Positions 10,495-25,810 of a stretch of DNA of 25,810 nucleotides are shown piece by piece. The translations under genes were made by a program, and so were the position numbers. Below the pieces are notes generated by a model that made no database searches, had not been told where the DNA came from, and was given only the letters and a program-made list of their open reading frames with translations. Source of the stretch: Prasinococcaceae sp. CCMP 1430 (lineage: Eukaryota; Plantae; Prasinodermophyta); contig RQSC01000014.1 in NCBI GenBank assembly GCA_013416795.1, positions 372,962-398,771 on the forward strand, given 5' to 3'. Position 1 is the first letter of the stretch, and each line of letters starts with the position of its first letter.

Positions 10495-10495
10495 N
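10495..10495. other. Single-N contig join between CFAP43 fragment and phosphorylase 5' region
   Basis: Seen directly. Unrelated genes on opposite strands abut it. Confidence 0.95.
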
Positions 10496-10636: not shown

Positions 10637-13600
10637 ATGTCCGCGGCCGCCGTGTCCGCCGTGCAGTCGATCGAGTACCACCACGCGTGCACGCTGGGCC
10701 GCCTGCCCCAGCAGCTCGACGCCGCGTCGGTGTACGCCGCGACTGCGCTCTCCGTGCGCGACGCGCTCGCGAGGCGCATGCTGGCCACCGAGCGTCGCGT
10801 CCGCGCGCAGCGGCCAAAGCGCCTGTGCTACTTGAGCGCCGAGTACCTGCCCGGGCGCGCGCTGCGCAACGCCGCGCAGTGCATGCGCCTCGAGGACGGC
10901 TACGCGCGCGCGGTGGCCGCCTTCGGGCTGAGCCTCGAGGAGGTGTGTGAGGAGGAGCGCGACCCGAGGCTGGGCACGGGCGGCCTCGGGCGCCTCGCGA
11001 GCTGCTTTCTGGACGCCCTGGCGACGCACGACTACCCGGCCGTGGGCTACGGCCTGCGCTACGCGTACGGTCAGTTCCGCCAGGCATTCACGGCGAGCGG
11101 CGAGCAGTGCGAGGCGGCCGACTGCTGGCTCGAGGGGCCGGGGCCCGCCGTCGTGCGCGTCGATGCGGCCGCGAATGGCGCCGCCAACGGCTCGGCCGAC
11201 GGCGCCGAAAGCGGCGCCGTCGGGGCCGCGAAAGGAAGCGGAGCGGGTGCCGCGAGCGCCGTCGAGGGTACGCACGGCAAGCACGGTGAGGGGGGCGAAC
11301 ACGCCGTGGTGCGGCGGCCGCCCCACCGCCCAGACCGCGCCGCTCGCGGGCCCGACAGGCCTCCCGCGCCGCGGATCGCTGGGGGTCGTGGGCAGCCGCG
11401 GCAGCGGCAGCGATGAGCACGTCCACCCCCGGCCCGCGCCGCTGCACCCGTGGGAATTCCGCCGCGACGACGTGGCGTACGTCGTGCGCTTCGGCGGCGA
11501 GGCGCGGCCGCGCGCGGACGGGAGCGGGGGCTACGAGTGGGTGGGCGGCGAGCGCGTGCTCGCGCGCGCGCACGACACGGTGGTGCCGGGCTACGCCACC
11601 ACCACCACGTCGCTCATGCGGCTCTGGTCCGCGGAGCCCGTGCGCGAGCTGGACTTTGCCGCATTCAGCGTCGGGGACTTCGAGGCGGCGATGGGCGACG
11701 CGCTGCGCGCGCGCTCGCTGACGGCGGTCGTGTACCCGGACGACTCGACGGACAGGGGGCGGAGGTTGCGCCTTCGCCAGCAGTACTTCTTCGTCAGCGC
11801 GTCGCTGCAGGACGCCGTCGGACGCTTCAAGGAGGAGGAGGAGGAGGCGCGGGGCGGCGCGGTGGGGCGGCGCGCGGGTTTGGACGGCGGTGCCGGCGCG
11901 CGCGGCGGCAGGGGCGGCGCCACGAGGGCGCGCGCCGCCGCCGAGGCGCTCTTCGCCGCCTTCCCCCAGCGCGTGGCCGTGCAGCTGAACGACACGCACC
12001 CGACCATCGCCATCCCCGAGCTGCTGCGCATCCTGCTGGACGAGGAGGGGCTCGGCTGGGACGCCGCGTGGGCGACGGTGTGCCGCACCTTCGGCTTCAC
12101 CAACCACACGGTGCTGCCCGAGGCGCTCGAGCGCTGGGCGGTGCCCACGCTGCAGGCGCTGCTCCCGCGGCACATGCAGCTCATCTACGAGATCAACCAC
12201 CGCTTCCTGGAGCTCGTGGCGGCCGTGTACCCCGGCGACACGGACAAGCTGTCGCGCATGTCCATCATCGAGGAGAGCGAGCCCAAGGCGGTGCGCATGG
12301 CCGTGCTCGCGCTGGTGGGCTCGCACACGGTCAACGGGGTGGCCAAGGTGCACTCCAACCTGGTGCGCTCCCGGCTCTTCCCGGACTTCGCCGAGCTGTG
12401 GCCGGAGCAGTTCACCAACGTCACCAACGGCATCACGCCGCGCCGGTGGCTGCTGGGGGCCAACCCCGAGCTGTCCGCCGTCATCACGCGGTGGCTCGGC
12501 ACGGACGCGTGGACCAAGGACCTGCGGCTCCTGAGGCGGCTGGAGGAGCACGCCTCCGACCCCGACCTGCACCAGCTGTGGGCGCGCGCCAAGCGGCGGG
12601 CCAAGGGGCGGCTCTGCGCCACCATCGGCAGGATCACCGAAGGGCGCCTGCAGGTGGAGGACGACTGCCTGTTCGACGTGCAGTGCAAGCGCATCCACGA
12701 GTACAAGCGCCAGCTGCTCAACGTGCTGGGCATCGCGCACCGCTGGCTCGCCATCCGCGCGTGCTCGCCCGCGGAGCGCTCCGCGCTCGTGCCGCGCGTG
12801 TGCGTGCTGGCGGGCAAGGCCGCGCGCGGCTACAGGCGGGCCAAGGACGTGCTGGCGCTCGCCAACGCCGTGGCCAACGTGGTGAACAACGACCCCGCCG
12901 TGCGGGGCCTGCTGACGGTGGCGGTGCTGCCGGACTACGGCGTGTCGCTCGCCGAGGCCATCGTCCCCGCCTCGGACATCAGCCAGCACATCTCGACGGC
13001 GGGCACGGAGGCGAGCGGCACGAGCAACATGAAGTTCGCGCTGAACGGGGGCCTGCTGCTGGGCACGCGGGACGGGGCGAACGTCGAGATCGCCGAGGCC
13101 GTGGGGGCCGATCAGATCTTCCTGTTCGGGCCGAAGGTGCGTTTCTTTTTTTTTTTTGGTGTGTGTGTGTGTGTGGAGGGGAGCGAGTTGCGCCGCGTGC
13201 CGCGTTTTCTGCGCGATGTCGCTGCCTCTGACACCGCCATGGCGACGCGCGCGCGTGCTCGCTCGCTCGCCCTGGCTCTCGCAACGACTTGCGCGACGAC
13301 TTGCGCAACGACTTGCAGGTGGGCGAGGTGGACGCCGCGCGCTCGGCGACCAAGGCGCGCAGCTCGGACGAGCGGCTGGACGCCGTCCTCCACCTGCTGC
13401 GCAGCGGGGCGTTCGGCAGGTACGAGCGCTTCAAGGCCCTCGTGGAGAGCTTCGAGGGCGCCAAGGACTACTACTTGGTGGGCCACGACTTCGGGGCGTA
13501 CCTGGACGCGATGCGCGCGGCCGACGTGCTGTACGCCAATCCGCGCGAGTGGACGCGGCGCTCGATCCTGTGCACGGCGCGCATGGGGCGGTTCTCGGCG

Positions 13601-13669
13601 GACAGGAGCGTCGAGAAGTACGTGCGGGAGATATGGGGGCTCGGCAAGCTCGCGCGCAATGGGGAGTGA
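10637..13669 (+). CDS. PHO: Alpha-1,4-glucan (starch/glycogen) phosphorylase, GT35; exons 10637..11285 (or ..11267), 11359..13136, 13319..13669; frame open back to the N at 10495
   Basis: YLSAEYLPGR, LGTGGLGRLASCFLD, RLRQQYFFVSASLQD, QLNDTHP, TNHTVLPEALE, TNGITPRRW, KRIHEYKRQLLN, PLP-lysine motif EASGTSNMKFALNG, RFSADRSVEKY. The frame change is explained by a phase-1 intron ending CCCGACAG|GC (11358). Phase-0 intron 13137-13318. Confidence 0.95.
13146..13174 (+). repeat. T12 + (GT)n microsatellite in phosphorylase last intron
   Basis: Seen directly. Confidence 0.8.
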
Positions 13670-13845
13670 ACGAACGTACAGCGACGGGGGCGGAGGACGC
13701 GCTGTGTCGCAGATGGCCCTCCAGAGGCGACGCTCGCGGCGGAGGCGCGCTCGGAGGCGCGCGTCAAGCCAGGCCGGGGGCGGCCTGTCTCTCCTGTTCG
13801 GTGTTGCGAGCGGAGGGAGCGGGTGGGGCGGGAGAGGGGGGGAGG

Positions 13846-16800
13846 AATGGGGACGCTGTGGTACACCTCGCTGTTCGCGTTCTGACGGACGTACGAAAAC
13901 ACTCAAAGCACTTTAACGATTTGTCGTATGCGGCCGCCCCTGCCGCGGGCACTGCGCGTGCGTGTCTCTGCGCGTCGCGCACGCGTAAGAGGGGTGCAAC
14001 TGGCGCACTACTGAGCTATCCGATTTATTTCAGGGTTCAGGGCTCGGGGCCGCGGTGTCGCCAGCAGCCCCCTCATCGACTTTTCCTTCATCCTCCTCGC
14101 CCTCGCCTGCCTTTTGGCTCGCGCTCCTCGCCACGCGCGCGCTCCTGAGCTTGGACAGCTTGGCGCGCGCCGCGCGCCGCACCGCCGCGCCGTGCGTGAG
14201 CACCGCCGACAGCACGGGCATCGCGAACACTATGCCCGAGGTGATAACCAACAGGGCGCCGATCACCAGCCGGTCGTTCGTGCCGCCGACGGTCTCTACC
14301 TTGACCAGCAGGCCGGCGAAGAGGATGAGCGCGATCTCGACGAGCGCCGCCTGTGCGGAGCGGTCCACCGCGGCGTCCGCGAACGGGCTGAGCGCCAGGT
14401 TGGCCACGAGAAAGAAGCAGGCGACGAGAAGCCCGACGGCAATCTGGCCGCTCCCGCCGGCGTCGACGAAGACCAGCGCGCCGGTCAGCACCAGCTTGCG
14501 CAGCAGCTCCACCAGCTCCCAATACCAGCACTCGGTGTGGTAGGAGGCGAAGAGCTGGCCGCAGTGGCGAATCGCGAGCGCCTCGTCCGAGTCGAGCGGC
14601 CCCGTGGTGCCGTCGGCGGGGCGGTCCTCCTCCGAGCCGCCAACTGGCCCGTCGGCCGACTCGGCCGCAGCGCCCCTCGCGCTGGCGCTCGACTTGGCGC
14701 CGAAGCAGAGCTCGCCGACCGGAGCGTGCGCAGCCGCCCACGCGACCAGCGCCTCGCGCGCCGTGCCGTCGTCGTCGGCGAAGGAGGCCGCTCGCGATGC
14801 CTTCCCCGACCGTGGCGACGTGGGGCCGTCCTCGCCCAGCTCGGCGGTCTTGGACTGCGGCGACGCGGGGGTGTCGCCGCCGGGTTGCTCGGCATCCTTC
14901 GACGCGTCGCCGGCGAGCGTTTGCGCGAGCTTCGTCCCGACGCGCACCTCGCCCTCGAAGAGCTGCTCGAGGGTGGCGCGCTCGCGCAGCAGGCGGCGCA
15001 TCTCCATGCCGAGCACGGCGTCCACCTCATCGGCGTCCTCGTTGAGCGCGATGCCCACCAGGAGGGCGTTGCGCGCCACGGCGCGGCTGTGGTGCCGGGC
15101 GGCGATGGCGCGCACGCCGTGGTGAAGCATGATCAGCCAGAAGAAGAGCGGGATGCCCACGACGTAGAGCGCAATGCCGATGGACGCAATCACCCGCGCT
15201 TCGTCGTGCGCGGCGGTGTCGCATCGCAGGCGCAGGTCGCTCGAGAGCCAGCGCACGCCGTCCACCTCGCGGCAGTGAAACGTCCTCAGCAGCGTGGCCG
15301 ACAGAATGGGGTAGACCAAGAAGAGGGCGAACAGCGAGTTGCGCCACACGTTGGCGCGGAAGCGCGCCAGGCGAGGGCGGCGGGCCTCGTCGCCCCTGGC
15401 GTAGAGGCGACCAACCACGAACAGCAGGAGCGTCACGACGCCAAAGGCCGCCGGAGCGCAACACCACAGCCGCAGCTTGTCGAAGAAGTTCCACCTTTCC
15501 AGAGAGCAGCGTACGCTGGGCAGCGCCAGCACGTCCAGGTTGATCACCTTGAGCGCCTTTACCATGTCAAGGAACGACCTCGGCCAGCGAATGTCAAAGG
15601 TGACATCCACCGTCGCGACGACCTGCACGAAGGCGATCAGCACGCGCGCGTGCGCCGCGAAGCTGCTGCGCTCGAGGCGACTCTCGACAGACTCTGCGGT
15701 CTCCGCGACGCCCTTGGCGACGGCTTCGGACGCCTTGCGACTCAGCGTCCGACCCAGCTGCGTCGTTTTTGTCAACAACAGAAACCGCTTACGACGTCTC
15801 GTTGATCGCTACGGAAAGTTGGCACGCTCTTGTGAGAACTACGCAAAGTCCTGCGGCGGGTGGTCCCGTAGCTCCGCGCCGAGGAATGGCAGCCAGTAGA
15901 GCAGCACCACGACGAGCGCGAGCGCGAGCGCTCCAGCCATCGCGCCGACCCACACGCTTCCACTCGCCTGGCACGACGAGCAGCCATCGCCCTCCGAGTA
16001 GCCATACCCCCCGAGCGTGTGGCGCGTGTCGTACGGCAGCATCGGCATCAGCGTCGCGGTGCTGCAGTCGGTCGCGTCCTCGAGGCCGGCCTCCAGCAGC
16101 GCGCGGCGGCTCCCACTAGCGCGAGCTCCATCCCCTCCACCTCCGTGCCCGCGCGGCGCGTGCTCGGGGAGGCACGCGGTGGGAAAGGGGCACGAGTAGA
16201 ACACGGGCGAGCAGTACAAAAGCGCGGTCATCGGGCGGTACGGCGAGCCGCGCGGCGGGCTCGACGTTAACCGCGGGCAGCCTGTGCTGCTCGTTCTGTG
16301 GTCGCCTCCTCCCGCGGTCCGTTCGGGATAGCTGCCGGGCAGGCACGCGCAATCGTCGACCGACGTGCTCCCCACCGCTCTCGTGGTTGCGCCGACGGGG
16401 CACGATGTGCAGCTGGTTGCGGCGGCGCCATCGGAGAACTTGCCCTGCTCGCACACGGCGCTAATGGGGACGCTGTGGTACACCTCGCTGTTCGCGTTCT
16501 GACGGACGTACGAAAACGAAAACACTCAAAGCACTTTAACGATTTTTCGTATGCAGCCGCCGCTGCCACGGGCGCTGCGCGTGCGCGTCTCTGCGCGTCG
16601 CGCACACGTAAAAGGGGTGCAACTGGCGCACTGCTGAGCTATCCGATTTCAAAGTCCCAAGTCCCGAGCCCCGGCGCCACAGCGGTCGTCGGGGGAGTAG
16701 CTGAATTCCTTCATCCTCCTCGCCCTCGCCTGCCTTTTGGCTCGCGCTCCTCGCCACGCGCGCGCTCCTGAGCTTGGACAGCTTGGCGCGCGCCGCGCGC

Positions 16801-19146
16801 CGCGCCGCCGCGCCGTGCTCGAGCACCGCCGACAGCACGGGAATTGGCTTGTGGTACGGGCTCCACTGGTGGTCGTCCCGCGGCTAGTGGGCGGCCAGCA
16901 AGCACGGCGGCTGCCAGAGTACCTTGACCAGCAGGCCGGCGAAGAGGATGAGCGCGATCTCGACGAGCGCCGTTCTACCTTGACCAGCAGGCCGGCGAAG
17001 AGGATGAGCGCGATCTCGACGAGCGCCGTCTGTGCGGAGAAGTCAACCGCATTGTCCGCGTGTGGGCTGAATGCAACGTTAGCCACGAGGAAGACGCAGG
17101 CGACGAGAAGCCCGACGGCGACCTGGCCGCTCCCGCCGGCGTCGACGAAGACCAGCGCGCCGGTGAGCACAAACTTGCGAATCATCTCCACCAGCTCCCA
17201 GTACCAGCATCGGGTGTGGTAGGAGGCGAAGAGCTGGCCGCAGTGGCGAATCGCAAGCGCCTCGTCCGCATCGAGCGGACCCGCGGTGCCGTCGGCGAGG
17301 ATGTCCTCCTCCGCGCGGCCAGCCGGCCCTACGGCCGATCCGGCCACACCGCCCCTTGCGCTGGCGCTCGAGTTGGCGCCGAAGCAGAGCTCGCCGATCG
17401 GGGCGTGCGCAGCCGCCCACGCGACGAGCGCCTCGTGCGCCGCGCCGTCGTCGTCGGCGAAGGAGGCTGCTCGCGATGCCTTCCCCGACCCTGGCGACGC
17501 TGGGCCGTCCTCGCCCTGCTCGGCGGCCTTGGACTCCGGCGACGCAGAGGTGTCACCGCCGGGCCGCTGGGCATTCTTCGTCTCGTCGCCGACGAGCGTT
17601 TGCGCGAGCCTCGTCCCGACGCGCACCTCGCCCTCGAACAGCTGCTCGAGGGTGGCGCGCTCGCGCAGCAGGCGGCGCATCTCCATGCCGAGCACGGCGT
17701 CCACCTCGTCTGCGTCCTCGTTGAGCGCGATGCCTACCAGAAGGGCGTTGCGCGCCACGGCGCGGCTGTGGTGCCGGGCGGCGATGGCGCGCACGCCGTG
17801 GTGAAGCATGATCAGCCAGAAGAAGAGCGGGATGCCCACGACGTAGAGCGCAATGCCGATGGACGCAATCACCCGCGCTTCGTCGTGCGCGGCGGTGTCG
17901 CATCGCAGGCGCAGGTCGCTCGAGAGCCAGCGCACGCCGTCCACCTCGCGGCAGTGAAACGTCCTCAGCAGCGTGGCCGACAGAATGGGGTAGACCAAGA
18001 AGAGGGCGAACAGCGAGTTGCGCCACACGTTGGCGCGGAAGCGCGCCAGGCGAGGGCGGCGGGCCTCGTCGCCCCTGGCGTAGAGGCGACCAACCACGAA
18101 CAGCAGGAGCGTCGCGACGCCGTTCCGGCGGCCTCGCGTTGTGGTGTCGGCGTCGAACAGCTTCTTCAAGGTGGAAACCAGAGAGCAGCGTACGCTGGGC
18201 AGCGCCAGCACGTCCAGGTTGATCACCTTGAGCGCCTTTACCATGTCAAGGAACGACCTCGGCCAGCGAATGTCAAAGGTGACATCCACCGTCGCGACGA
18301 CCTGCACGAAGGCGATCAGCACTGTCAAAGGTCACATCCACCGTTGCGACGACCTGCACGAAGGCGATCAGCACGCGCGCGTGCGCCGCGGCGCTGCTGC
18401 GCTCGAGGCGACGCTCGACAGACTCAGCAGTCGCCGCGACGGCCTCGGAGGCCTTGCGGCCCTGCTGCGCCTTCTTTGTGTGGTCGACTTTGGTGCACGC
18501 AACAAAGCGCTTCGCGACGCGTTCCAGAACGCCGCCCACCCGGGCGTCGAGGCTCGGCAGGAATGGCAGCCAGTAGAGCAGCACCACGACGAGCGCGAGC
18601 GCGAGAAATGCAGCCACCGCGCCGACCCACACGCTTCCACTCGCCTGGCACGACGTGCAGCCATCGCCCTCCGAGTAGCCATACCCAGGCTCGCACACCG
18701 CGCACAGCATGCCGTCGTAGCCGTAGTCGCAGCGCCACGACGAGTCGGCCGCGTCCTCAAGGCCGGCCTCCAACAGCGCGCGGCGGCTCCCACTCGAGCT
18801 TGGAGCGCGAGCGCCATCCCCGCCACCCCCGTGCCCGCGCGGCGCGTGCTCGGGGAGGCACGCGGTGGGAAAGGGGCACGAATAGAACACGGGCGCGCTC
18901 ATGTTTTCGCGCCAGTAGCCCGCCATGCCGCTCGGTGCCCCGCCCGAGCTGCAGTTGCCGCCCGTCGGGCACGACGAGCAAGACACCTCGTCTTCTCCCG
19001 CGGTCCGTTCGGGATAGCTGCCGGGCAAGCACTGGCAATTGTCGACCGACGTGCTCCCCACCGTTCTCGTGGTTGCGCCGACGGGGCACGACGTGCAGCT
19101 GGTTGCGGCGGCGCCATCGGAGAACTTGCCCTGCTCGCACACGGCG
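13846..19146. repeat. Head-to-tail tandem segmental duplication, unit A 13846..16460, unit B 16463..19146 (3' half of receptor gene plus 3' flank)
   Basis: Both units start AATGGGGACGCTGTGGTACACC and end GCTCGCACACGGCG. They are colinear with alternating identical and diverged blocks, roughly 90% identical by eye. Confidence 0.92.
14030..16460 (-). CDS. Receptor copy A: last Cys-rich repeats plus ~9-TM membrane domain, 5'-truncated
   Basis: Intact 582-codon ORF 14030..15778 (VLIAFVQV, FLVYPILS...FHC, YWELVELLRKLVLTG). Upstream 15779-16460 is colinear with copy B and becomes one open frame with the ORF once three in-place complemented segments are complemented back. Confidence 0.75.
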
Positions 19147-21689
19147 CAGCTAAGCCCGTCGACCTCAGTGCCGGCGGGACATGCGCACACCGTCGAGCCG
19201 CTTACCACGAGAGCCGTCATCAGCGGGTCGCTGCACGCGCATGCCGACGCCGCGGTGGAGCCAGCGGGGCTGTTCGCGCCCGCGGGGCAGTCGGTGCACG
19301 ACACCGCGCCGTCGCCGTCGCTGAAGGTGTTGGCGGGGCAAGGCTCGCACTCGGGGTTGATGCCGCTGGGGCCGTACGTGCCGGCCGCGCAGTCGGTGCA
19401 CGCGCTCGCGCCGGCCACGCTGGTGCGCCCGCTGCCGCACGCCGCGCAGTCGCCCGCGGAGGTGCTGCCGGCGCCGGCGACGAAGGTACCTGCGGGGCAC
19501 TCGGTGCACTGCGCCGCGCCCACGGCATCCGCGTACGTGCCTGCGCCGCAGGGCGAGCAGGCGGTCGCGTCGGTGGCGTTGGTCGCCGAGCCCTTGGCGC
19601 ACTGCGCGCACGCGGCGCCCCACGTCTGCGTCGCCGAGGCGCCATCGAGGCGATACCAGCCGCCGCCCTGCAGCGCGCCGCACGCGTAGCACTGCTCGCC
19701 CGCCTGGGGCGTGAAGGCGTTGGCGGGGCAGTCGTCGCAGGACGTTTGGCCCGTCGAGGCGGTGGTCGTGCCGATGGCGCACGTGTCGCAGGTGGAATGG
19801 CCAGCCGAGGGCTGGTAAAGGCCCTTGGCGCACGGCTCGCACGTCGACGAGGCGGTGGCGCCTATCAGGGCAGAAGAGGTGCCGGCGGGGCACTCCTTGC
19901 AGCCCTCGCCCGCGGCGTCGGCGTAGGTCCCGGCGGGGCAGTCAGAGCACGCTTTTGAGCCAATGTCTGAGCCTTGGCCCGCCGGGCAGGCGAGGCAGTC
20001 CGCCGAGGTTGCGGAGAACGTGGCGGCGTTGTATGTGTTGGCGCCGCACGGTTCGCACTGCCTCGCGTCGCCGCCGTACGAGGCCACGTACATGCCGGGC
20101 GGGCACGCGTAGCAGGAGGAGGTGTCGATCGTGCCGGCCGCGCATATCGAAAGCTGGACGGCGAGGGCGTCTACAGAGCCACCGACGTACGAGCCGAGCG
20201 CGCTCCACGCCGCGCCGTCCCACTTGGCGATGTAGGACGTGCCCGACACGCCGCCGGCCGAGTAGAAGCCGCCGCCGACGTACAGCGAGCCCGACGAGGC
20301 GTCCCACGCGAGGGCGCGTACATAGCCGGCACCGACGCCCGAGCCGAGCGCGCTCCACGCCGCGCCGTCCCACTTGGCGATGTAGGAGAAGCCGCCCACG
20401 TACAGCGAGCCCGACGAGGCGTCCCACGCGAGGGCGCGGACAGTGTCTTCCCACGCGACGGCGCGGACAGTGTCATCGACGCCCGAGCCGAGCGCGCTCC
20501 ACGCCGCGCCGTTCCACTTGGCGATCTCTGACGTGCCCGACACGCCGCCGGCCGAGTCGAAGGAGCCGCCGACGTACAGCGAGCCCGACGACGCGTCCCA
20601 CGCGAGGGCGCGTACCAGATCGCCATAGACGCCCGAGCCGAGCGCGCTCCACGCCGCGCCGTCCCACTTGGCGATATTGGACCTGCCCGACACGCCGCCG
20701 GCCGAGCCGAAGTCGCCGCCGACGTACAGCGAGCCCGACGAAGCGTCCCACGCGAGGGCATAAACACTGTAACCATCGACGCCCGAGCCGAGCGCGCTCC
20801 ACGCCGCGCCGTCCCACTTGGCGATCCCTGACGTGCCCGACACGCCGCCGGCCGAGTCGAAGGAGCCGCCGACGTACACCGAGCCCGACGAAGCGTCCCA
20901 CGCGAGGGCGTTAACTGTGCTATCGACGCCCGAGCCGAGGGCGCTCCACGCCGCGCCGTCCCACTTGGCGATGCCGGACGTGCCCGACACGCCGCCGGCC
21001 GAGTCGAAGTCGCCGCCGACGTACAGCGAGCCCGACGATGCGTCCCACGCGAGGGCGTACACATAAGCACCATTGACGCCCGCGCCGAACGCCGCCGTCC
21101 ACGCGTCCCCTTCATGCAGCATCGCGCCTTCGTATCCACCAACCGCGAGCCGTGAGCCGCTCGAGACCGTTCGCACGTTCGCGTTAGCGGAGAGAACAAC
21201 CTCCGCGTCCATGCCATCGTCGGCAAAGCCCATCTCGCCGGCGTACGCGCCGGCCGCGCCGAGGCCCGAGCCGAGCGTCAGCGCAATGGACACCGACGCG
21301 CCGCCTGAGAGCGTTCCCAGGGCGGGCGAGGCCGACAGCCACGCGTCCGAGGGCGCAGCCGCCCACTCCATCGCGCTGGCCGCATCGTTGGTGAGCGTGA
21401 CCGTCGCGGTCGTGGTTGTGCTATACGCCATCGTCTCGGACACGCTCACGGGCGACACGATGAGGGGCGGCGACACGGTGAGCTGCAGCGGCAGCCGGAT
21501 GGCGTCGCCGCCGCTCGAGCCCACCACCAGCACTGCCGAGTGCGCGCCCTGCGCCAGCCCCGACGCGTTCATCCGCACCGTCACGCTGGCGCTGGCGCCA
21601 GCCGCGAGGCCGCTTCCAGCGTTGGCGCCCACCACGCTCGCCCACGCCTCGCTGACGGTGGCGAACCAGTCGAGAGTGGCCGAGCCATC
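16653..21689 (-). CDS. Receptor copy B: ~1,600-aa surface protein, 2 BACON-like domains + beta-propeller + GCC2/GCC3 (ephrin-receptor-like) Cys repeats + ~9 TM helices
   Basis: ORF 18273..21635 extends in frame to acceptor CACCTCGTAG|GAT at 21690. ORF 16649..18328 supplies the TM part. The breaks correspond to two short tandem duplications and three complemented segments. First exon and signal peptide not located. Confidence 0.85.
20160..21100 (-). repeat. Six ~147-150 bp coding tandem repeats (ALAWDASSGSLYVGGxFxSAGGVSGTSxIAKWDGAAWSALGSGV), beta-propeller blades
   Basis: Six near-identical units read directly in ORF 18273..21635. Unit 5 is shortened and carries a 27-nt internal duplication (20422-20475). 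Confidence 0.95.
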
Positions 21690-22184: not shown

Positions 22185-22455
22185 GTGCGGGCGCCCCCGC
22201 GCGCGCGAAAATCGGGCGCGTTCGAAAAAAAGCGGCGGGGCGACGACTCCGATTCGAAGGCGCCCCGCTTTTCGCGTGGGTTTTGACCTCAGCGCTCGCG
22301 GAGCGGTGACGTGCCGCCAGGGCCGGGTGTGGATTCGGATGTGAGGCCGGGACCCGCCCCCGGAGGGCTCGGTGTGCGTTGTGAAAACCCAGAGATTGAT
22401 CCGAGACCCGCCCGCCCTCGGTCCCTTTCGGAAACCCCGAACAGGCGGGTTTATT

Positions 22456-22746
22456 CTGGCAGGGAGCTCTGCCGACCTGGCAGGGAGAGCTGAAACATGG
22501 CAGGGAGGCCTTTAAACACGGCAGGGAGAAGGTTTTCGTCAGATAAATTTTTTGAGGCGCCAGGGTTCAGCGGACGTGACGGCGGCGACCCACAGTGGCC
22601 GTCGGCGGCCGGGAGTCCTATATCAAAATGCACCTACCTCCCAGAAACCCTGATTACATCAAAATGCAACTTACAATGCGTGCATGGCTTTTGCAGCTCC
22701 CTGCCAGCGGCATGTCTCCCGTTTTTATTGTGAGAAACGGGAGACA
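22456..22746. mobile_element. Candidate DNA-transposon terminal/subterminal region (phased GGCAGGGAG motifs, inverted copy, hairpin)
   Basis: Four GGCAGGGAG at 22458, 22479, 22499, 22520. 13-bp inverted pair CTGGCAGGGAGCT (22456-22468) / AGCTCCCTGCCAG (22695-22707). 12-bp-stem hairpin at 22713-22746. No transposase or TSD seen. Confidence 0.3.
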
Positions 22747-23203
22747 CTCCCTTGGAAAACTCACGGTTTGATATACAAATGCATGCAATATGTAGAATGC
22801 AATTTGATGTGAAAGTGGCGGAGCTGAGCAGCCAGCGAGAGCTCCTGTGCACGCATTTGATCGTACGCGCGCAAATTCTTCGCCGGCCAGGCGGGGGCAG
22901 CCTAACAGCCATCACAGGCAGGGGGGCGCCATCGCTGCTGCCTGCGGTGGCACAAGGCGCGCGCGGCGCGCGGCGCCGCCGGCGCGCGCCTGCGGGGCGG
23001 GCGGCACCGCTCGTGCGACCGTCGGCGCAGTGGGGGGAGGGGTGCTCGCTGCGCTGGCCGTCTCCGCCCATCCCTTGCCAGTGTGGCGCGCGGCCGGCAG
23101 GGTGGCTGGCCTGTTCAGTCTTTGCGGCGGGGCCTGCTGTTGCAAGGCCGCCACAGGCGCCCCTCATTTTGCCCTTGCGTCAGGCGCCGTGGCGCCGGGC
23201 GCG

Positions 23204-23619
23204 ATGGCCGCTCTGCTTCGACACGAGAGCGCCCGAGAGCATAGTACGCGCGCCGCGCGGGCCCTCGTGTTCCTGCCGCTAGGCTTCGTGCTGTGGACGG
23301 CGCTTACGCTATGGGCCGCCTTCGTTCGCAACTCAATGTCACTCAACCAAAGCGATGGCGGCATGACCACCCACGCCGGCCGCATCGACATCACTGCGGA
23401 GGCTGCTACGTCCGCGACCACTCGCGGCGGCGGCAACAGTAGCAGGGCACGGCACCTGCGAGATGAGGCGGGCCTGCACCGCGCGCGTTCGCAAAGGGAG
23501 GCCGAGCTCGGTCCAGGGACGCTGCGAGCGCTGGTGAACGGCCTCACGGTGGTGCGAATGGCCGAGAGGCAGCAGCTGTGGCAGAGACCCCCGCGCGATG
23601 ACAGTGATTCGACCAATGC
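23204..23619 (+). CDS. Hypothetical type II membrane protein, 5' part, runs into gap
   Basis: MAALLRHESAREHSTRAARALVFLPLGFVLWTALTLWAAFVRNS...: short basic tail, one hydrophobic segment, then a polar stem. Codon bias is weaker than in host genes. Confidence 0.4.
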
Positions 23620-24135
23620 NNNNNNNNNNNNNNNNNNNNNNNNNNNNNNNNNNNNNNNNNNNNNNNNNNNNNNNNNNNNNNNNNNNNNNNNNNNNNNNNN
23701 NNNNNNNNNNNNNNNNNNNNNNNNNNNNNNNNNNNNNNNNNNNNNNNNNNNNNNNNNNNNNNNNNNNNNNNNNNNNNNNNNNNNNNNNNNNNNNNNNNNN
23801 NNNNNNNNNNNNNNNNNNNNNNNNNNNNNNNNNNNNNNNNNNNNNNNNNNNNNNNNNNNNNNNNNNNNNNNNNNNNNNNNNNNNNNNNNNNNNNNNNNNN
23901 NNNNNNNNNNNNNNNNNNNNNNNNNNNNNNNNNNNNNNNNNNNNNNNNNNNNNNNNNNNNNNNNNNNNNNNNNNNNNNNNNNNNNNNNNNNNNNNNNNNN
24001 NNNNNNNNNNNNNNNNNNNNNNNNNNNNNNNNNNNNNNNNNNNNNNNNNNNNNNNNNNNNNNNNNNNNNNNNNNNNNNNNNNNNNNNNNNNNNNNNNNNN
24101 NNNNNNNNNNNNNNNNNNNNNNNNNNNNNNNNNNN
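23620..24135. other. Assembly gap (516 N)
   Basis: Seen directly. Confidence 0.99.
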
Positions 24136-24637: not shown

Positions 24638-25810
24638 GGGTTTATTCTGGCAGGGAGCTCTGCCGACCTGGCAGGGAGAGCTGAAACATGGCAGGGAGGC
24701 CTTTAAACACGGCAGGGAGAAGGTTTTCGTCAGATAAATTTTTTGAGGCGCCAGGGTTCAGCGGACGTGACGGCGGCGACCCACAGTGGCCGTCGGCGGC
24801 CGGGAGTCCTATATCAAAATGCACCTACCTCCCAGAAACCCTGATTACATCAAAATGCAACTTACAATGCGTGCATGGCTTTTGCAGCTCCCTGCCAGCG
24901 GCATGTCTCCCGTTTTTATTGTGAGAAACGGGAGACACTCCCTTGGAAAACTCACGGTTTGATATACAAATGCATGCAATATGTAGAATGCAATTTGATG
25001 TGAAAGTGGCGGAGCTGAGCAGCCAGCGAGAGCTCCTGTGCACGCATTTGATCGTACGCGCGCAAATTCTTCGCCGGCCAGGCGGGGGCAGCCTAACAGC
25101 CATCACAGGCAGGGGGGCGCCATCGCTGCTGCCTGCGGTGGCACAAGGCGCGCGCGGCGCGCGGCGCCGCCGGCGCGCGCCTGCGGGGCGGGCGGCACCG
25201 CTCGTGCGACCGTCGGCGCAGTGGGGGGAGGGGTGCTCGCTGCGCTGGCCGTCTCCGCCCATCCCTTGCCAGTGTGGCGCGCGGCCGGCAGGGTGGCTGG
25301 CCTGTTCAGTCTTTGCGGCGGGGCCTGCTGTTGCAAGGCCGCCACAGGCGCCCCTCATTTTGCCCTTGCGTCAGGCGCCGTGGCGCCGGGCGCGATGGCC
25401 GCTCTGCTTCGACACGAGAGCGCCCGAGAGCATAGTACGCGCGCCGCGCGGGCCCTCGTGTTCCTGCCGCTAGGCTTCGTGCTGTGGACGGCGCTTACGC
25501 TATGGGCCGCCTTCGTTCGCAACTCAATGTCACTCAACCAAAGCGATGGCGGCATGACCACCCACGCCGGCCGCATCGACATCACTGCGGAGGCTGCTAC
25601 GTCCGCGACCACTCGCGGCGGCGGCAACAGTAGCAGGGCACGGCACCTGCGAGATGAGGCGGGCCTGCACCGCGCGCGTTCGCAAAGGGAGGCCGAGCTC
25701 GGTCCAGGGACGCTGCGAGCGCTGGTGAACGGCCTCACGGTGGTGCGAATGGCCGAGAGGCAGCAGCTGTGGCAGAGACCCCCGCGCGATGACAGTGATT
25801 CGACCAATGC
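24638..25810 (+). repeat. 1,173-bp direct repeat, copy 2
   Basis: Appears identical to 22447..23619 and stops at the same base (GACCAATGC). Confidence 0.93.
25395..25810 (+). CDS. Second identical copy of the hypothetical type II membrane protein 5' part
   Basis: Same sequence as 23204..23619, truncated by window end. Confidence 0.4.
   Translation, partial: MAALLRHESAREHSTRAARALVFLPLGFVLWTALTLWAAFVRNSMSLNQSDGGMTTHAGRIDITAEAATSATTRGGGNSSRARHLRDEAGLHRARSQREAELGPGTLRALVNGLTVVRMAERQQLWQRPPRDDSDSTN

Follow-up and report, generated by a model that had tools for sequence, protein, structure and literature searches.

In the tandemly duplicated 3' part of a receptor-like gene, six short blocks each read as the unreversed complement of the sister copy, and we regard them with high confidence as errors of the assembly, not DNA of the alga. 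An earlier note on this DNA had suggested an assembly or orientation artefact for the three blocks that lie in one copy. This reading is borne out by three independent metagenome contigs (L001-L003), by read contigs and by homologous proteins, all of which carry the unscrambled form.

The affected gene belongs to a Prasinoderma-type green alga and is encoded on the minus strand of the window, the whole 25,810-nt stretch of DNA that was analysed. Its duplicate is arranged in tandem with a unit size of 2.6-2.7 kb, and a repeat search shows direct repeats at a spacing of 2617-2686 nt, and the two units, A and B, align with each other. Unit A (13846-16462) is a partial gene copy comprising the last Cys-rich repeat, the membrane anchor, a C-terminal multi-helix domain and the 3' flank, with minus-strand ORFs at 14030-15778 and 15839-16525. 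Unit B (16463-19147) belongs to the full-length gene and forms its 3' part; upstream, the gene extends to 21635 at least. The ORF at 18273-21635 contains the Pfam domains BACON_2, a Rax2-like propeller and seven copies of Ephrin_rec_like (117 bits over the 7 stretches); BACON_2 and Rax2 also exceed the curated Pfam cut-offs. A match to the TRP family PF06011 stays below threshold, with 16 bits against a cut-off of 28.5, which makes a channel-like assignment weak. PF06011 is present in the distant relative P0005. At 15351-15529, the read-contig variant nearest to the window is about twice as deep as a single copy would be, which fits A and B being two real copies. Among the assembled read-contig pieces listed, a minority of the total, no bridge over the A/B junction (16462/16463) was seen.

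Three of the blocks lie in B, where the earlier note had placed them. Block 1 (16651-16705, 55 nt) is the unreversed complement of A 14028-14082 and spans the stop codon together with the 17 codons before it. At an offset of 2623 the complement agrees at 55/55 positions and plain identity is 0/55. Block 2 (16847-16919, 73 nt) corresponds at the same offset to A 14224-14296 and encodes the last membrane helix; here the complement agrees at 68/73 positions and plain identity is again 0. The five remaining positions reflect ordinary variation specific to B: over 25/25 residues, the peptide obtained on restoration is identical to the reference Prasinoderma protein P0001, and A differs there. Since the restored block keeps B-specific variants common to P0001, block 2 is a transformed stretch of B itself and was not pasted in from A. 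Block 3 (18123-18177, 55 nt) is the complement of A 15444-15498 (offset 2679; 55/55, plain identity 0) and turns ERWNFFDKLRLWCCAPAAF into VSTLKKLFDADTTTRGRRN. The flanks of the three blocks show 93-100% A/B identity, and the bases just before blocks 1 and 3 (16650 and 18122) are A/B variants.

Complementing the blocks back yields ERWNFFDKLRLWCCAPAAF, ETVGGTNDRRVIGALLVVTSGMVFAIPVLSAVL and KVDEGAAGDTAAPSPEP, followed by a TGA at 16655-16653, the true stop codon, which is hidden in the written sequence as its own complement. The restored reading terminates in DTAAPSPEP, the same as the end of A at 14032-14030. As the earlier note had proposed, restoration thus recovers the conserved peptide, the last TM helix and the stop. 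Complementing alone does not, however, give a single continuous frame in B, because a 56-nt stutter shifts the frame between the gene body and the last two blocks. In this stutter, 16918-16973 is repeated as 16974-17029, and the first 2 nt overlap the end of block 2. A second stutter of 52 nt repeats 18271-18322 at 18323-18374 with 2 mismatches and shifts the frame as well, between the ORF at 18273-21635 and the one at 16649-18328; L003 2380-2329 is matched twice by B at this place. Neither stutter is present in A, nor in the independent contigs L001 and L003.

The remaining blocks lie in A, so that, as the earlier note had maintained, both copies are affected, at different places. A 16011-16065 (55 nt) is complemented, and its correct version is B 18688-18742, which as written matches L002 at 55/55 and L003 at 50/55 positions. 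A 16213-16301 (89 nt, 84/89 complementary) corresponds to B 18899-18987. The latter as written matches L002 at 82/89 positions, and the complement of the A block matches the same contig at 94%. A further stretch that was absent from the earlier list spans approximately 15770-15881 (about 112 nt, with the left edge placed to within a few nt), and possibly consists of two adjoining 55-nt blocks. When it is complemented back, two in-frame stops vanish and LPFLPRLDALVGGVLKRIK appears as in P0001.

Could the written blocks be real DNA, through true small inversions or an unfamiliar copying process? An inversion produces the reverse complement of a sequence. Like a small inversion, or an inverted contig within a scaffold, each block disagrees with its paralogue and homologues while its flanks agree; the difference is that the blocks keep the bases in order and exchange each for its complement. 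Reverse-complement matches amount to 15/55, 20/73 and 11/55 for blocks 1, 2 and 3, and to 11-22 of 55-89 positions overall, which is background, as are the 16-22 reverse matches across the three B blocks. Biological inversion was rejected on these grounds, and inverted repeats that reach 40 nt are absent from the window. Chance was likewise rejected: 55/55 in register has a probability of about 1e-30 at roughly 0.29 per site. For the 28-mer A/B pair quoted in the earlier note the complement is exact (0/100 shuffles), and beyond the A/B pair no unreversed-complement match in the window is longer than a GC-rich, low-complexity one of 19 nt. Neither replication nor repair is known to copy a strand in parallel. 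Moreover, the written blocks ruin conserved residues, a membrane helix and a stop codon, and the independent contigs, read contigs and proteins are all unscrambled. No observation in favour of real DNA emerged, and we therefore consider it extremely unlikely that the blocks are real DNA of either kind. That 55-nt stretches were copied in parallel beside paralogue variants has in our judgement next to no probability; if true, it would imply an unrecognised templated repair or conversion process.

Independent DNA points to the restored sequence. In blastn, the complemented window gives matches to L001-L003 that are collinear with those of the flanks as written. In B they cover 16847-16919 and 18122-18177, and in A 16011-16065, 16213-16299 and, with L002, 15824-15881. 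The complement of block 2 matches L001 956-884 at 93%, and that of block 3 matches L002 at 89% and L003 at 84%. A's correct counterparts, as written, agree with L001 at 63/73 positions for block 2, and with L002 and L003 at 49/55 and 44/55 positions for block 3. For both blocks, L001-L003 and four homologous proteins carry A's version, not B's.

The proteins tell the same story. The scrambled peptides are absent from all 5 homologous proteins found (P0001-P0005), and the restored peptides agree with P0001-P0004. Restoring block 3 raises its BLOSUM62 score from 26 to 113 against P0001, from 24 to 88 against P0002 and from 19 to 82 against P0004. For block 1 the independent contigs give no homologue support, their protein tail having diverged too far. 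A local DNA alignment of this C-terminal tail, which is also partly palindromic, with L001 gave insignificant scores of 17 and 22, and a 39-mer of block 1, written or restored, had no exact match in JGI metagenome contigs, a blank result that favours neither form. For block 1 we thus infer the error from the read contigs and from reading-frame logic.

The read evidence consists of assembled contigs of public runs, not raw reads, and of the minority of their pieces that was listed. In three runs, read contigs agree with A over 13871-14052, 14134-14297 and 15351-15529, which supports A's version at all three B blocks. The first of these intervals, which bears on block 1, is found in error-free contigs of X1, X2 and X5, and an X2 contig over the second carries A's version of block 2 with 0 differences. 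B's version is carried by read contigs at 18555-18935. In X2, loose ends before 16066 and before 16302 spell B-like letters, and a loose end behind 15764 spells the complement of A as written. Contigs of X1, X2, X5 and X16 carry unscrambled versions, and in this contig evidence the depth bins over the B blocks are low or zero.

How might an assembler write such blocks? Pieces of k-mer scale would have been set down with each base complemented and the left-to-right order kept, either because a piece of the opposite strand was reversed without complementing or because a piece was complemented without reversing. Such errors would arise where near-identical paralogues branch the assembly graph. 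Of the six blocks in the A/B pair, three are exactly 55 nt long and the rest measure 73, 89 and about 112 nt. Each 55-nt block begins one base past an A/B difference; the 89-nt block in A begins three bases, not one, past the nearest variant. The 52-nt and 56-nt stutters resemble unmerged overlaps of contig ends, as known from short-read scaffolds. They are about the size of the blocks, but repeat the sequence correctly, whereas the blocks transform it. The responsible step would be a de Bruijn-graph or gap-closing step with a k of about 55-56. No single k accounts for all of the lengths, which are 73, 89 and about 112 nt in the longer blocks and 52 and 56 nt in the stutters.

Database records are sometimes deposited as complement-only or reverse-only strings through an error of submission. 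These are alike in that half of the reverse-complement operation has been applied, but there whole records are affected, and here the blocks are k-mer-sized and lie within correct sequence. A literature search on complement-without-reversal artefacts returned nothing relevant.

Local patching after assembly, by polishing, gap filling or manual editing, could also have inserted short filler or consensus pieces with wrong strand handling. The blocks are short and sharp-edged and adjoin stutters, and the window holds N gaps as well as an exact redundancy of 1173 nt that spans one of them, all of which would suit patching. This explanation is a sub-case of an assembly artefact more than a true rival, and the repeated length of exactly 55 nt, together with the link to paralogue variants, favours an automatic k-mer step over editing by hand; as a separate account we rate it as very improbable. 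At the single N at 10495, a test for a stutter found no overlap.

In two-base encoding, a sequence and its complement share one colour string. A SOLiD-type decoding error, in which decoding restarts with a wrong anchor base, would accordingly produce the complement up to the point of correction. Just two colours, one at each block edge, separate an in-place complement from the true sequence, and the three 55-nt blocks start straight after a variant base, where decoding could slip. SOLiD errors resemble the blocks in that they permute the bases of a stretch downstream of a given position; three permutations are possible, the complement among them. With random errors, however, the A<->C/G<->T and A<->G/C<->T exchanges would be expected as often as the complement, and 6/6 blocks are pure complement. 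Re-registering after exactly 55 nt, three times, would in addition need a second compensating error each time. The earlier note had argued against colour-space errors from the lack of any other permutation, and this argument holds, given that no other transform occurs, that the block length is fixed and that register is regained. Published Prasinoderma data come from PacBio and Illumina sequencing, and nothing points to colour-space sequencing. Taken together, colour-space decoding is a very unlikely source of the blocks, and a k-mer step of the assembly stays the preferred one.

The published P. coloniale genome was produced with NextDenovo, Arrow and NextPolish and comprises 22 chromosomes. 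As a product of long-read tools it should lack gaps such as those in the window, and how it would fit with an assembly that has gaps and many pieces is not obvious.

Biologically the blocks carry no meaning, but they are a real quality warning for users of the assembly. Each one swaps about 18 codons for nonsense, which in a GC-rich genome often stays open. Because such nonsense is silent, gene models, orthology calls, pseudogene counts and variant or mutation calls near paralogous families will be wrong. In the A/B pair, the six blocks together with the two stutters leave a conserved loop and the last membrane helix scrambled, hide the stop and make an intact gene look frameshifted. A codon log-odds scan of the rest of the window for more blocks in single-copy genes left even the known blocks unrecovered; the scan is powerless because reversed codons are equally coding-like at 70% GC. 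The signature of the blocks is simple, exactly 55 nt of pure complement that often begins one base past a paralogue variant, and would allow automatic screening and correction across the entire assembly.

The minus-strand receptor gene carries a tandem duplicate of ~2.6–2.7 kb, defined by repeat search and pairwise alignment (unit A, 13846-16462; unit B, 16463-19147). Do the segments in which one copy reads as the unreversed complement of the other belong to the genome, or to its assembly? An all-against-all comparison of the window with its own unreversed complement returned five collinear A/B blocks, all other matches being GC-rich and no longer than 19 nt. A 14028-14082 is the complement of B 16651-16705 (block 1, 55/55), A 14224-14296 of B 16847-16919 (block 2, 68/73), A 15444-15498 of B 18123-18177 (block 3, 55/55), A 16011-16065 of B 18688-18742 (55/55) and A 16213-16301 of B 18899-18987 (84/89). 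The coordinates that the earlier note had assigned to blocks 1 to 3 in copy B, and its quoted 28-mers, are exact. Plain A/B identity is confined to 0–2 positions within the five blocks and amounts to 93–100% in their flanks. Reverse and reverse-complement matches (11–30 positions) stay at background, and the blocks are therefore not inversions, a source ruled out by the reverse-complement comparison. All three 55-nt blocks begin one base past an ordinary A/B difference (14027/16650, 15443/18122 and 16010/18687); the 89-nt block begins three bases past the nearest one, and for the 73-nt block the start can be placed only to within one base. A further stretch of copy A, ~112 nt or about two 55-mers at ~15770-15881, is likewise complemented and not reversed. 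When it is complemented back in place, two in-frame stops disappear and the frame encodes LPFLPRLDALVGGVLKRIK, which P0001, the homologous protein of Prasinoderma coloniale, also has; the A-versus-B comparison misses this stretch because the two copies genuinely differ there.

Which copy is written correctly at each block? We compared both with three independent contigs that code for relatives, two of them SPAdes-style NODE contigs in ENA (L001 and L002) and the third a MEGAHIT contig from Tara Oceans (L003). Over blocks 2 and 3, copy A as written matches L001 at 63/73, L002 at 49/55 and L003 at 44/55 positions, whereas copy B as written reaches only the background of 28–38 matches. At 18688-18742 and 18899-18987 it is B as written that matches L002 (55/55 and 82/89), and A fails to match. 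A blastn search of the complemented window against L001–L003 gave matches only at 15824-15881, 16011-16065, 16213-16299, 16847-16919 and 18122-18177, all collinear with the flanking alignments as written. The unscrambled peptides occur in all four homologous proteins (P0001–P0004). The five in-register blocks and these collinear matches confirm the in-place complementation described in the earlier note. Its claim that both copies are garbled at different places also holds: by the independent contigs, A is wrong at 16011-16065 and 16213-16301, and B at blocks 2 and 3. For block 1, exact metagenome scans with the written and restored forms gave no match and no homologue lends support, the C-terminal tail having diverged; its polarity is predicted from read contigs and the in-frame stop.

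Read-level evidence came from Logan contigs, assembled from public runs. In three runs, contigs without errors extend over A 13871-14052 and so carry, in the A form, the stop codon together with the initial 25 nt of block 1; a contig of run X2 covers A 14134-14297 with no differences, including the whole of block 2 in the A form. Contigs from four runs carry the A form at 15351-15529; contigs of runs X1, X5 and X16 carry the B form over 18555-18748 or 18555-18935. Loose ends in X2 show B-like letters preceding 16066 and 16302, and the complement of A behind 15764. Depth bins over the B blocks are low at 16515-16695 and, in two runs, zero at 18144-18324, of which multi-mapping could explain part.

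The three blocks of copy B were then complemented by script. This turned VSTLKKLFDADTTTRGRRN into ERWNFFDKLRLWCCAPAAF, replaced a stretch containing a stop with ETVGGTNDRRVIGALLVVTSGMVFAIPVLSAVL, and gave the tail KVDEGAAGDTAAPSPEP, followed by a TGA at 16655-16653. BLOSUM62 scores of blocks 2 and 3 against relatives rose from 19–31 to 82–121. Restored block 2 agrees with P0001 at 25/25 residues, including where A departs from it, which shows that B's own sequence was transformed and not a copy of A. Restoration, as proposed earlier, thus recovers the conserved peptides and the stop codon, but complementing alone does not yield one continuous frame, owing to two short tandem repeats, or stutters. 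One of 56 nt (16918-16973) recurs exactly at 16974-17029, and one of 52 nt (18271-18322) recurs at 18323-18374 with two mismatches. Each shifts the frame, neither has a counterpart in A, L001 or L003, and both look like contig-end overlaps joined end to end.

Because DNA strands are antiparallel, we know of no biological process that makes an in-place complement. Four features suggest that the blocks arose in an automatic step of assembly software working with k-mers (an assembler, scaffolder or gap closer; k ~55–56): their fixed 55-nt length, their position directly past paralogue variants (graph branch points), the unmerged-overlap stutters accompanying them, and the N gaps, one of which lies between two exact copies of a 1173-nt sequence. 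In such a step, a piece from the opposite strand would be reversed without being complemented, or a piece complemented without being reversed. Random colour-space errors are an unlikely source: of the three base permutations that such errors allow, only the complement occurs, as the earlier note had argued, and register returns after exactly 55 nt. The analysis thus supports its reading of an assembly artefact. The complemented blocks are not a real genome feature and their biological interest is low; their practical value is as a warning of systematic scrambled blocks in this assembly, for which screening is possible. We found no paper describing an in-place complement artefact. The published P. 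coloniale assembly, with 22 chromosomes, was produced with NextDenovo, Arrow and NextPolish.

An ORF at 18273-21635 encodes BACON_2, a Rax2-like propeller and seven Ephrin_rec_like repeats. Beyond it the receptor gene runs on into unit B, with a membrane anchor and then a C-terminal multi-helix domain that matches TRP (PF06011) only below threshold; unit A is limited to the final Cys-rich repeat plus the anchor and C-terminal domain. The nearest named protein is PRCOL_00007229 (P0001; 90% identity), and three further relatives come from marine metagenome assemblies. At the tandem junction (16462/16463) the full gene's 3' flank runs straight into the partial copy, midway through a Cys-rich repeat; no bridging contig was seen among the read contigs, and the tandem arrangement is putative. 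The two copies show 100% identity over 15100-15443 plus 15499-15643 versus 17779-18122 plus 18178-18322, and only 89–95% elsewhere, a mosaic that could reflect gene conversion or paralogues threaded chimerically by the assembler. Read contigs suggest ~6–7 family copies in the genome, ~2 of which belong to the variant nearest the window. A starch/glycogen phosphorylase-like gene (10947-13916, plus strand) is convergent with the receptor copies; its conserved core reads through, with no scrambled block visible there.

The window has ~70% G+C and N runs at 852-1637, 10495 and 23620-24135. The N at 10495 stands alone within otherwise continuous sequence, and its flanks do not overlap, directly or as complement. 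The 1173-nt redundancy (22447-23619 and 24638-25810) is 100% identical, with the copies offset by 2191 nt, the first to the left of the N gap at 23620-24135 and the second reaching the window end; it is either scaffold redundancy around the gap or a very young repeat. At 43–45% G+C, this region is unusually AT-rich for the genome.
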